Below the pieces are notes generated by a model. The model was not told where the DNA came from and searched no databases. It was given only the letters and a program-made list of their open reading frames with translations. From assembly GCA_002269645.1 (NCBI GenBank), contig NIVC01001290.1, positions 1 to 43,721 of the forward strand: DNA of 43,721 nucleotides, read 5' to 3'. The position numbers and the translations under genes were made by a program. Positions 17,290-21,779 of the stretch are shown here, piece after piece; the stretch's first letter is position 1, and the number at the start of each line of letters is the position of its first letter. Source of the DNA: Macrostomum lignano. Lineage: Eukaryota.

Positions 17290-20200
17290 TCACCTATTGA
17301 CGGCGCCCTTCTGCAGCCGCAGGTCCCGCTGGTGCTGCTGCCACAGTCGTTTGAGCTGCCGGCTGCGAGTCCGCCTGGCCCGAGTTCGCCGGAGCTCCCG
17401 AATGTTGCCAGCCGCCAGGCTGTAGCCTTTGTGCAGCGTCAGCAGGACTCCGCACAGCGCGGCCCCGAAGCTCCACACCGACTGCGTGCGCATGATGTAG
17501 GACTCCGCCACGATGCCGCTTTTCCATTCGAAGAACAAAAAGAACTGCTTCCGGCTGCTGGCATCGGACTGATGGCGGTCCCAGTGCCACACCAGGCTGT
17601 ACTGATGGCCCGCGACGGACGGGGAAAGGTATAAATAGAGGTCATCAGGGAAACTTCTCTGCACATGTTATTGGAGATCGCCTACTAAATAGTAGCAAGT
17701 AAAGAATGTGAAACGAATCTCAAGTGGAGTTTGGAAGAGTGTTGCGTACTAATACACTTGTAGTTGAATAGACAGAAATTCTAATTGGAGTCGGCCACAG
17801 CCAAAGGGCGCCAATACTTGGTGTCTAGGTCGGCGCCCTGTTTCTTGGTTGGCACCCCTACCCACATCTCCTAGGCCGGTGGATGCCACGTTTAAGAGGT
17901 GGCAAAAGCGTAAACGCCACTGCTCTCACATGTCTAAAGAGTAGAGACATTGAGAAGCTTCTAATAGGAACCAGTTTAAGACAGATTTGTTTATTAAGTC
18001 TGGTACGCTCGTACCTAGTGCGTCCAAAAAGTTCTTAGACACCCCTCCTATCTCTGCATCTGTTTAATCGATTTATATGGAATGTTACACAAACATGGAC
18101 CTATATGTAATGAATTCAGTGCTAAAGTTTCAGCTTAATCGGGTTGACAGAGCAAAAGCAATCGATCATTTACTGAAGAACCTACGAAATTAGCAATACG
18201 ATTTTAAACTCAACAAAATGTAAAAGTTAACGAGCAAACAGTTCAAACTGACAAGTTCCAGAACTTCAAAAACAGATCACCAATCGTGAAAATCTTCAGA
18301 AGAATCTTCATTCCGTCGAATGCACTTGTCATATCGCATCAGCAACTCATCCTCAATCCACGCCGACCACATCGGCGTAGGTGTCGCTCTGATCAGCCCC
18401 TCAGCAGCCGCTTTCAGCTCGGGGGAAGCTGGAAAACCGCTGGCCTCTTGGACTCATCCTGCGTGCTGAATCTGCTCTTGAACTCGTCTCCCAGAGCTGA
18501 AACTGCCGCCCTTTGTTGCAAGCAGACTTCGTATCGGCGATTCTTTTGCTCTTAAACCACCTGAGGCTGGTTCCGCGTCTCAGCATCTGAATCTGGCTAT
18601 GCTGCTTACTGCTCTGTTCTTTTTTGCTCTTTAATCTATGGCTAAACCCTCACAGCTTGCATTAGTATTAAATCAATTAAGGTATTAATCAATACTCAGA
18701 GAAAGCAGTGATATTTTGCTGATTAATTTTTCTGAAAAATGAGCTGCAATGTCACCACTGGAGTCCAGGTTCGATGCTCTTCAAAAATCGTATTGCTAAT
18801 TTTATACGTTCCTCAGTAAATGATCGATTGCTTTCGCTCTGTCAACCCGATTAAGCTGAAATGTTAGCACTGAATTCATTACATATAGGTCCATGTTTGT
18901 GTATTTTTTTATAAAAATCGCTTGAACAGATGCAGAGATAGGAAGGGTGTCCAAGAACTTTTTGGACGGTTAACTCTGCCAACCTGCAGGAATCCTACCG
19001 GCAAGGGGCAGGCGTGCACTCGGCGTTTTTTTGACAAGCAGACCAAAAATAGCTAGCGTCGGCTGGCTGAAGTCAGTGTCGGCGCCTCCAGGCCTAGAGG
19101 TGAGGCTGCTCTCTTTAGGAACTAACTGACAGCGTATTCTGTTGTTTGTTCGTTGTTGTTTTCAGTCAATTGTCCCGGTCTGTGACTTGCTAATTTTTTT
19201 TCTACAATAGCTCAGTAAATAGGCAGTTTCGTGGGCTCACCTCCAAGTCCAGCACCACCTGAGTGGGCTCGTGGCCGCCCTCCAGCTCCATGTGGGTCAT
19301 GCTGAGCCGGTTCCACATGCGCAGCCCGGCAGACGCCGCGTACATGGGCTGGTGGCTGCGGATGTCGGCTACGAACTCCAGCCGGTCGGCCTGTGACCTG
19401 CAGACGCAGTTCAGGTGTCACAAAATTTGGGCCTATCTGTAGTTTGCGTTTGCGAGTCTCTCGCTTTGTGAATGTATGTTCGTGTCTTTCGGTAGCGGTA
19501 CCGAGATTGGAACTTTCTGACTGGAGGTCGGTCAAATGCCTCATATTTTGGGAGTTGACCCACAGCGATCGCTGAATCTGCCTATTCCGCTGACACCTGA
19601 GCACATACCGGTACAAGCACGCACTCATACGCAACGCTTACACAGGGTGTACAGCGGTCCTGACTTTCTAGTCGTCAGACATGTACACTCTGTGATTTGG
19701 GAATCGGCCCTCTTGGGTGGGAATCGCACGAAAACTCGCTGGCCAATTTTCGTTCACAAGCCCCAAATGCACCCTTATCTCGGGGTTCGGGTTTAGTCAT
19801 CCGATGGGTGCACACCGATTGCTGAAGGCCCAGTAGTCATGGAACAGCAGAAACCCCAGCGAGTAGAAATCCTGATCATCGCTTGTGTCAGCCGTAAAGT
19901 AGAGGAACAGCGTCTCCTTCTCCTTGACTCTGGAGGGGCCCATGAACACAAGTGCGTCGTGTCCAGCAAACTCGTCAGTCTGGTTGTCCGCAGCGTCTCT
20001 GTAGGTCAGGCTGCGGTAGTCGCAGTCTGTCCGGTTCAGATTCCACTGCGTCGCGTGGTCTAAAAATCGGCCGGTTTTTTCAATTTCGAGCTTCTCTCGA
20101 GTTACAGACTGGGCAAACTTTCGGTCTGTAGTACCGAAAGTGCACCGGGGGACTCACGCACTCCAGAATTCAGCGCTGAGGAGCCGGTAGTAGCTGCAGG

Positions 20201-21779
20201 ACTGCAGTCTAGGCCCGTTGGGAAACACCGCGATGCCTGAAGTGTTGACAGCGGAATGCAGCGCATGCTAGGAAAAGAAAATTCCAATGAAATATGATGA
20301 AGGAGAAATTTCCGTCTCGTGGGAAATGGGCTGAATAATTAGCATCCAGGGCAAGTTGCATAGCAACTGACTGCCGACAGTGGATCGTGGATATTCTGCT
20401 TTCTTATTTGGCTTGTGTTTTATGCTCCTGTTGGAGCAGCACGTTCACATGAGTCAGGAGTAGAATCACCAGGTAATACATGATTACATCGATACTGATG
20501 ACTACTACTACTACTACTACTACTACTACTACTACTACTACTACTACTACTACTACTACTACTACTACTACTACTACTACTACTACTACTACTACTACTA
20601 CTACTACTACTACTACTACTACTACTACTACTACTACTACTACTACTACTACTACTACTACTACTACTACTACTACTACTACTACTACTACTACTACTAC
20701 TACTACTACTACTACTACTACTACTACTACTACTACTACTACTACTACTACTACTACTACTACTACTACTACTACTACTACTACTACTACTACTACTACT
20801 ACTACTACTACTACTACTACTACTACTACTACTACTACTACTACTACTACTACTACTACTACTACTACTACTACTACTACTACTACTACTACTACTACTA
20901 CTACTACTACTACTACTACTACTACTACTACTACTACTACTACTACTACTACTACTACTACTACTACTACTACTACTACTACTACTACTACTACTACTAC
21001 TACTACTACTACTACTACTACTACTACTACTACTACTACTACTACTACTACTACTACTACTACTACTACTACTACTACTACTACTACTACTACTACTACT
21101 ACTACTACTACTACTACTACTACTACTACTACTACTACTACTACTACTAATACAGGTAAACTGTGTAATGTTTGTCGTTATTCTCACCTGGAGCGTCATA
21201 GCGATCCACTGGCCGATGTTTCACCGACCGCATGGGATACCTAGTCGCCTGGAGCAGGTCCTGGATGAGCTGAACAGTGAAAAGACAGGCTGCCACTCCA
21301 ACTATTGCCATGGCAACTGTAGAACTCACGCGCCAGTAGTATTCGCGCTTGGAGATGTACTTTTCCTGAACTGCCGTCTGACTTGCCGATGTACAGGGGG
21401 CTGCTGAAACGCCAGATCTGTGATTGAGCATTTGATGGAGTAGATAATTATCAACACATTCTTTGTTAAAATCATCGAACTTTGGCAATTAAATTGGCTA
21501 AAATTGAAAAATACAGAAGCAAAGGCCATTTAGCTTTCAAATGATTGCTTCACTTTACTGACCATTCACTGCCATCATATATTGCTGCTTGCATATTTGT
21601 AAGACTCCATAGTTAATCCCAACTTCTTACATGTCCATGCATTAGTTCCATAGGGCAAAGTCTTTCTGCCATTCTCACCCTTCTCCTGCCAAGCGGCCAG
21701 TAATCTGAAGCATCGCTGTACTGACTCCCTTTGCAGCTGTGCCAACACCTTTAGTTTTATCAGCGCTTTCCGAAGTCAT
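17290..21779 (-). CDS. PACC1: Proton-activated chloride channel PAC/TMEM206 homolog, about 372 aa, 6 exons
   Basis: Exons 21779-21679, 21417-21188, 20236-20162, 20059-19816, 19397-19241, 17601-17290 (1119 nt, phases consistent, GT-AG). Signature matches to human PAC: TM1 followed by YPMRSV...VDRYDAPGIA; QSC...DC cysteine pair; DNQT sequon; ALVFMGP...KEKETLFLYF; SAGLRMW; FFLFFEWK; TM2 WSFGAALCGVLLTLHK; basic C-tail. Confidence 0.95.
18021..18968 (-). mobile_element. Non-autonomous Tc1/mariner deletion derivative with about 185-bp TIRs, in PACC1 intron 5
   Basis: 18021-18205 (cgtccaaaaagttcttagacaccc...agcaatacgatttt) is the reverse complement of 18783-18968. The interior - strand reads ELKAAAEGLIRATPTPMWSAWIEDELLMRYDKCIRRNED, similar to a mariner transposase C-terminus. 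The TSD is not clean. Confidence 0.8.
18985..19165 (+). mobile_element. RTE-type LINE 3' remnant (degenerate)
   Basis: Reverse-oriented homolog of 27975-28120 and 37885-38085 (ggcaaggggcaggcgtgcactcggcgttt); followed by a (TTG)-like tail at about 19140-19160. Confidence 0.65.
20500..21148. repeat. Perfect (ACT)n microsatellite, about 215 units, in PACC1 intron 2
   Basis: Direct; explains the poly-S and poly-T ORFs. Confidence 0.99.

Follow-up and report, generated by a model that had tools for sequence, protein, structure and literature searches.

A probable intact PAC/TMEM206-type anion channel gene of spiralian character in a 43,721-nucleotide stretch of DNA

Gene model of the PAC-type locus

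The stretch of DNA analysed here (contig NIVC01001290.1, 43,721 nucleotides; hereafter the window) carries on its minus strand, between positions 21779 and 17290, a six-exon gene whose predicted product is related to PAC (proton-activated chloride channel; PACC1/TMEM206/ASOR). PAC was discovered recently, is unusual in structure and has been investigated in vertebrates alone. A transposase reading frame lies upstream of this gene and a TTL-domain reading frame downstream, in a region rich in tandem repeats. Based on the gene structure, the family match and the relatives described below, it is very probable that the window holds a real, intact PAC-family anion channel gene of the spiralian or flatworm type.

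A complete six-exon open reading frame (ORF) within 17290-21779 had been proposed in an earlier reading made without database searches (the sequence-only reading), and the proposal was borne out, as the exon coordinates are exact, the frame is open and all five introns have GT...AG borders. The resulting coding sequence (CDS) has 1119 nt and encodes 372 residues. In the minus-strand translation of 17200-21900 the gene appears as six open pieces in three frames, which come into one frame once spliced. Between an upstream stop in the same frame and the start codon (ATG at 21779, minus strand) no other ATG occurs in that frame; the stop codon of the gene is TGA at 17292-17290.

All exons are on the minus strand. 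Exon 1 (21679..21779, 101 nt), which is tentative, contributes the start codon and the cytosolic N-terminal residues 1-34; its donor GTGAGA is in phase 2 and fits exon 2 in frame. Exon 2 (21188..21417, 230 nt) encodes the remaining N-terminus, the first transmembrane segment (TM1, ~64-90), the linker between TM1 and the extracellular domain (ECD) and the motif VDRYDAP-G. This stretch matches residues 76-115 of human PAC, and the exon ends in a phase-1 donor at a column common to the genes of Tubulanus polymorphus (a nemertean) and Ptychodera flava (a hemichordate). Exon 3 (20162..20236, 75 nt) encodes IAVFPNGPRLQSC(124)SYY..., with the first extracellular Cys and with Y126 and Y127 replacing the human residues H130 and H131; the Tubulanus gene also contains a 75-nt exon with the same phases. 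Exon 4 (19816..20059, 244 nt) covers the finger and beta-ball part of the ECD, including C148, the sequons NRT and NQT, and E184 (human E181). This exon is backed by tblastn and by the multiple alignment, and its phase-2 donor column is shared with Tubulanus and Ptychodera. Exon 5 (19241..19397, 157 nt) contains the motif SAGLRMW, strands beta10-11, E256 (human E250), Q263 (human E257) and a 2-residue insertion also present in a Macrostomum lignano protein, and ends in a phase-0 donor, again at a column common to Tubulanus and Ptychodera. Exon 6 (17290..17601, 309 nt plus the stop codon) encodes beta12 (E269, D277), the FEWK motif (K296), the second transmembrane segment (TM2; W312, G320, L323, K327) and a basic C-terminal tail, and in tblastn it shows 61% identity to the M. 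lignano protein.

Intron positions were compared in a three-way protein alignment for which the Tubulanus polymorphus and Ptychodera flava proteins were mapped exactly to their genomic loci. Introns 2-5 fall at alignment columns 120 (phase 1), 147 (phase 1), 228 (phase 2) and 281 (phase 0). In column and phase these coincide with all four Tubulanus introns, and three of them are also present in Ptychodera. Because intron positions and phases are conserved, the donor A|GTGCGT, which yields the 75-nt size, was chosen for exon 3 and the acceptor at 17601 for exon 6, the latter being backed as well by the alignments with Tubulanus and with the nemertean Lineus longissimus (VEYSVV...). Two candidate splice sites were discarded. 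With the donor GC|GTGAGT, exon 3 does not match the phase of exon 4, and an in-frame acceptor of exon 6 near 17667, which would add RSFPDDLYLYLSPSVAGHQ, finds support neither in any homologue nor in the position of the conserved phase-0 intron.

When the whole window was searched by tblastn with the model and two homologues, the PAC gene was found as a single copy, with no stray or missed exons, and no plus-strand gene overlapped the locus. The CDS has a GC content of 0.59, rising to 0.73 at third codon positions (GC3), strongly above that of the introns (0.35-0.51). These features bear on the possibility that the locus is a silent or decaying copy, i.e., an unprocessed pseudogene whose frame is open by chance in a region rich in repeats and transposons. 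Over 1119 nt there is neither a stop codon nor a frameshift, and each of the ten splice dinucleotides is of the canonical type, with positions and phases that are conserved. Decay might be suspected from the dense minisatellites around the locus, the 653-bp microsatellite in intron 2, the foldback in intron 5 and the mariner-type transposase 2 kb upstream; however, the repeats are confined to introns and flanks and the exons are free of them. Likewise, several positions with an essential role in human PAC are changed (E257Q, L309A), but the family-invariant W287, C149 and G312 are kept. Altogether, a pseudogene is considered improbable, and the reading as an intact gene is retained in what follows.

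Family membership, relatives and lineage

Against the Pfam family TMEM206 (PF15122) the window protein scores 133.9 bits (E 8.3e-39), the curated gathering cut-off being 27, and the match extends over profile positions 22-290 of 296; no other Pfam family was matched. A sequence search of the PDB retrieved only chains of proton-activated chloride channels (9hqn, 8h8d, 7jna and others; E ~1e-33), which align from TM1 to past TM2 (query residues 70-350 with chain residues 75-342). A match to human PAC along its length had been asserted beforehand, and it is confirmed both by the TMEM206 profile and by the nearly full-length alignment with solved PAC chains. All the motifs quoted in support are present: VDRYDAPG|IA at 104-113 (across the junction of exons 2 and 3), the Cys pair C124/C148, FEWK at 293-296 and LCGVLLTLHK at 318-327.

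TM1 corresponds to a hydropathy peak at residues 62-90, and TM2 (~310-330) aligns without gaps to the human TM2, leaving ~220 residues between the two segments. C124 and C148 are equivalent to human C128 and C149, the second of which is nearly invariant over 18 family members. The architecture shown by alignment is that of a short cytosolic N-terminus, TM1, a beta-rich ECD of ~220 residues that the conserved Cys pair stabilizes, TM2 and a basic cytosolic tail. By analogy with the characterized members, the product would most likely be a trimeric anion channel of the PAC family. Compared with human and other vertebrate PAC proteins (structures 7JNA and 7JNC; PF15122), the same two-segment topology, large ECD and Cys pair are found, together with E181, E261, D269, the FEWK motif with K288, W304, G312, L315 and K319 (human numbering). 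In contrast, identity is ~29%, the positions of D289, Q296 and D297 are occupied by S, Y and I, a 2-residue insertion precedes beta12, and TM2 reads LCGVLLTLHKGY instead of the vertebrate LCGAFLALFKAA. In the papers reporting PAC structures, a likeness to ASIC/ENaC/degenerin channels was pointed out (trimeric assembly, two transmembrane segments, large ECD), ASICs being acid-gated as well, and the window protein presumably functions in a comparable manner. These channels have no sequence relationship to the window protein, however, and are cation-selective.

A word-indexed search of 5.8 billion proteins returned only two relatives, M. lignano A0A1I8GFN0 (44% identity) and a PAC-like protein of Lineus longissimus (35%). 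For a census of the family the Lineus protein, and not the window model, was used as phmmer query against 1.84 billion representatives, which yielded 116 clusters with E <= 1e-3, 16 of them with E <= 1e-30; when these were compared with the window protein, none came closer than the M. lignano fragment. The named long representatives are from nemerteans (Tubulanus, Lineus), the annelid Ridgeia piscesae, hemichordates (Ptychodera), flatworm and vertebrates, and many others are encoded on further eukaryote contigs. Identity to the window protein is 44% for M. lignano (52% over aligned columns), 35-36% for the nemerteans and 25-30% for vertebrates.

The nearest relative, A0A1I8GFN0, is a fragment of 249 residues named 'Proton-activated chloride channel' in UniProt. 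It lacks the N-terminal third and contains, between beta12 and FEWK, an insertion of ~35 residues with a run of Arg that is not present in the window protein. Both proteins carry the tail SLAAGN(I/V)R.L(R/K)RTR and are nearly identical in TM2 and the C-terminal tail, and they are the only ones with the 2-residue insertion before beta12. Nemertean (Tubulanus polymorphus XP_074645017.1 and Lineus longissimus isoform X2) and annelid (Ridgeia piscesae KAK2173466.1) proteins are 32-36% identical to the window protein and have in common with it the signatures SxGLRMW and LCGV(L/F)LT(L/I)H(K/R)G(Y/F); more broadly, SAGLRMW and LCGVLLTLHKGY are common to the window, flatworm, nemertean and annelid proteins. 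Unlike the window protein, the two nemertean proteins and the annelid one have E or D at the position of human E257 and no 2-residue insertion.

Neighbour joining (287 columns, 200 bootstraps) placed the window protein beside that of Macrostomum with 100% support; nemerteans and annelid joined this pair at 74%, and this same group plus one environmental sequence was recovered at 98%. Human, fish and Ptychodera proteins formed a separate clade (100%); the hemichordate proteins (Saccoglossus kowalevskii XM_006811230 and Ptychodera flava XP_070558143) group with vertebrates, apart from the window protein. The suggestion that the source is an invertebrate, probably a flatworm, is reasonable in view of the spiralian type of the protein, its position as sister of the M. 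lignano protein at 100% bootstrap and the insertion that both contain. Beyond the family match itself nothing speaks for the contig being a contaminant from a vertebrate or other deuterostome with an ordinary PACC1. Identity to vertebrate PAC is just 25-30% versus 44-52% to the flatworm protein, the window protein falls outside the deuterostome clade (100% bootstrap), and its sequence signatures are shared with the flatworm, nemertean and annelid proteins. Moreover, the 75-nt exon is shared with the nemertean gene, and the hemichordate gene lacks that intron. Given the sisterhood with M. lignano and the separate deuterostome clade, a vertebrate contaminant is ruled out, and such an origin of the contig is regarded as scarcely conceivable.

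The locus is thus read as a nuclear PAC-type gene of spiralian origin that is probably expressed, the likeliest source being a flatworm allied to Macrostomum. At 44-52% identity the two flatworm-type proteins are too divergent to represent the same gene in the same species, so that the M. lignano entry belongs either to another species or to an old paralogue.

In the founding paper TMEM206 homologues were stated to be absent from "simpler animals", with hemichordates as the only invertebrate group acknowledged to have TMEM206 (Ullrich 2019), and later papers describe PAC as conserved in vertebrates. In our literature search no paper was found that connects PAC or PACC1 with flatworms or protostomes. 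The statement that PAC has been characterized almost only in vertebrates agrees with these sources. At the level of databases, flatworm, hemichordate, annelid and two nemertean entries are already annotated automatically as PAC or PAC-like, and deeper eukaryotic lineages are present too. The sequence-only reading had expected the gene to be informative for the origin of acid-gated anion channels. Since homologues are already deposited, however, what it can say about how the family arose is limited. The family is known and the lineage already represented in it; the window gene adds a new, complete member and not a new kind, and taken alone it leaves the picture of the origin of the family unchanged. 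Its value resides in being a full-length flatworm-type sequence, the public M. lignano entry being a fragment, and it may become a target for RNA interference if the source animal is a tractable flatworm.

As a side observation, deep-branching TMEM206 homologues were found on large eukaryote-like contigs (ENA ERZ25068685 and ERZ18545498), where each forms one continuous ORF that lacks introns. At one locus two TMEM206 genes (4282-5460 and 10001-11146) are separated by 4.5 kb; the other locus is at 10001-10930. Two TMEM206 genes at one locus do not agree with the published claim that paralogues of TMEM206 are absent from every species.

Functional residues and predicted gating

Human residue numbers were transferred through the alignment with 7jna and a MAFFT alignment of 22 family sequences, and the positions whose roles have been established by experiment in human or pufferfish PAC were compared. 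On this basis, the extracellular Cys pair is conserved (C128/C149, here C124/C148), as is E181 (E184), which in PAC is essential for folding and assembly via H130. The salt bridge of the joint region, E261/K288 (E269/K296), which is essential for activation, is also present, together with D269 (D277), which regulates pH sensitivity. In and around the pore, W304 (W312), part of the binding site for phosphatidylinositol 4,5-bisphosphate (PIP2), the gate residues G312 and L315 (G320 and L323) and the selectivity-filter lysine K319 (K327) are conserved. In human PAC, E261 and K288 were found to be essential for activation, and the K319E substitution turns the channel cation-selective.

Several points weigh against an intact, functional PAC-type channel and are collected here. 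H98, H130 and H131, which together with D269 are key determinants of pH sensing, are not conserved and correspond to Y94, Y126 and Y127; thus, of the pH-sensing set only D269 (D277) is retained. E107 is replaced by P103, and E257, essential for activation, by Q263, an assignment for which the alignment is uncertain because the 2-residue insertion adjoins it. The gate residue L309 is A317, and R93 and K294 are L89 and E302, the PIP2 site being only partly kept. In the predicted N-terminus there is no YxxL endosomal (AP2 sorting) motif; the sole Yxx-phi sequence is YWRV (61-64), at the edge of TM1, and exon 1 contains no Tyr. Concerning the gene model, exon 1, intron 1 and the start codon have no homology support, as the N-terminus is not conserved, and are based on ORF and splice logic. 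An alternative in-frame ATG ~15 nt upstream of the exon 2 acceptor (MLNHR|SGVS...) would give a model without exon 1. Furthermore, no canonical AATAAA occurs within ~1.2 kb past the stop codon; the nearest one on the minus strand is ~1.2 kb downstream. Finally, the Saccoglossus PAC, the only invertebrate one tried, did not leave the endoplasmic reticulum of human embryonic kidney (HEK) cells and was never recorded (Ullrich 2019).

The sensor positions vary among the relatives as well. H130 is kept in Ptychodera and in both nemertean proteins, with Tyr in the window protein (the annelid fragment does not span this region). Homologues from nemerteans and hemichordates carry N, H or R at position 98 and Y at position 131. 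Judging from the aligned sequences, the comparison shows the Cys pair, E181, E261, D269, K288, W304, G312, L315 and K319 to be the apparently ancient functional residues of the family, among which the sensor histidines and E257 would not be included.

Taking the vertebrate structures as a guide, three subunits would assemble into an ASIC-like homotrimer in which the TM2 helices line a central pore gated at G320 and L323. A ring of K327 side chains (human K319) would provide anion selectivity. As in PAC, contraction of the ECD may be coupled to pore opening through the joint formed by E269 and K296 (human E261 and K288) and through D277. The gating stimulus is the least certain step of this scheme. 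Acid would be the likeliest and, given D277 and the many acidic residues present, the most economical stimulus; as Tyr replaces the three sensor histidines and Gln replaces E257, its pH dependence is proposed to be shifted or weaker.

The designation "proton-activated" given in the sequence-only reading is accordingly sustained in part. The conserved residues E181, E261, D269 and K288 are in its favor, but Tyr stands at the positions of H98, H130 and H131 and Gln at that of E257, so that acid gating is a property that we infer. For the window protein itself the case for gating by acid appears evenly balanced. In human PAC, mutagenesis demonstrated that H98, H130, H131 and D269 cooperatively set pH sensitivity and that their mutation alters basal activity and pH50, and the E257Q variant retains very small activity. 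From this it could be proposed that the window protein is a PAC-family anion channel with diverged gating, i.e., constitutively leaky, opened by a stimulus other than protons or requiring much stronger acid, its pore (G312, L315, K319) being intact despite the replaced histidines and E257. The variability of the His positions in nemertean and hemichordate homologues points in the same direction. On the other hand, conservation of D269, E261, K288 and E181 indicates that the transduction machinery is present; acidic residues could serve as sensors instead, and a Tyr-Glu hydrogen bond in the finger domain could stand in for the H130-E181 contact. Diverged gating is thus held to be possible, if somewhat unlikely, and a PAC-type channel that may respond to acid, perhaps with an altered pH dependence, is the reading maintained here.

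A more far-reaching proposal is that of a natural "histidine-less" PAC in which the anion pore and the joint transducer are kept and gating is fundamentally unlike that of vertebrate PAC (weak or no acid dependence, constitutive opening or another stimulus). On the residues compared here this would be a rather doubtful proposition. If true, it would imply that steep proton activation at ~pH 5 was gained in the deuterostome/vertebrate line, and that TMEM206 was ancestrally an anion channel of another kind. A natural variant without the histidine sensors of vertebrates offers a convenient test case for the way in which the family encodes acid sensing.

Repeats and neighbouring reading frames

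Two repeats are located within the introns of the PAC gene. Intron 2 contains an (ACT)n microsatellite of 653 bp (20501..21153) for which Tandem Repeats Finder gave a period of 3, 217.7 copies and 99% matches. In intron 5, an inverted repeat at 18021..18968 has 185-nt arms (18021-18205 and 18784-18968) that are 91% complementary and separated by 578 nt; judging from this structure, it looks like a foldback element or a non-autonomous transposon of the miniature inverted-repeat transposable element (MITE) type.

About 2 kb upstream of the PAC gene, an ORF of 311 residues on the minus strand (23766-24701) encodes a mariner/Tc1-type transposase with HTH_32 and DDE_3 domains. Compared with the 353-370 residues of its relatives, its length suggests that it is probably a truncated copy. 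No exact match to this ORF was found in the look-up, and the relatives nearest to it (93% and 85%) were confined to short contigs (Logan SRR28338164/156/166 and SRR12687280; JGI metagenomes 3300043259, 3300043242 and 3300038379). Downstream of the PAC gene, a plus-strand ORF at 12409-13137 contains a tubulin-tyrosine ligase (TTL) domain (PF03133, E 4e-14) and, based on this domain, probably represents one or more exons of a TTLL gene; with the raw ORF as query no homologue was retrieved at E <= 1e-10. Another plus-strand ORF (35515-36438) encodes a GC-rich, Ala/Ser/Gly-rich sequence of 307 residues with a C-terminal C3HC4 RING finger (PF13920, E 9e-9) and may be a single-exon gene for an E3-ligase-like protein; the gene-position index contained no exact match to it. 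Scanning the window for Rfam families and tRNA genes gave nothing.

Tandem repeats make up about one sixth of the window. The density of minisatellites is exceptional between 1051 and 17281, with periods of 14-63 bp; examples of arrays are those at 1051-1766, 3156-3609, 4607-5130, 10099-10793, 11511-12004, 13504-14068, 14583-15653, 16216-16542 and 17183-17281. A 14-bp minisatellite starts 9 bp past the PAC stop codon. The two arrays with a 22-bp period (13504-14068 and 14583-15653) constitute one repeat family and lie on either side of an ORF at 14101-14502.

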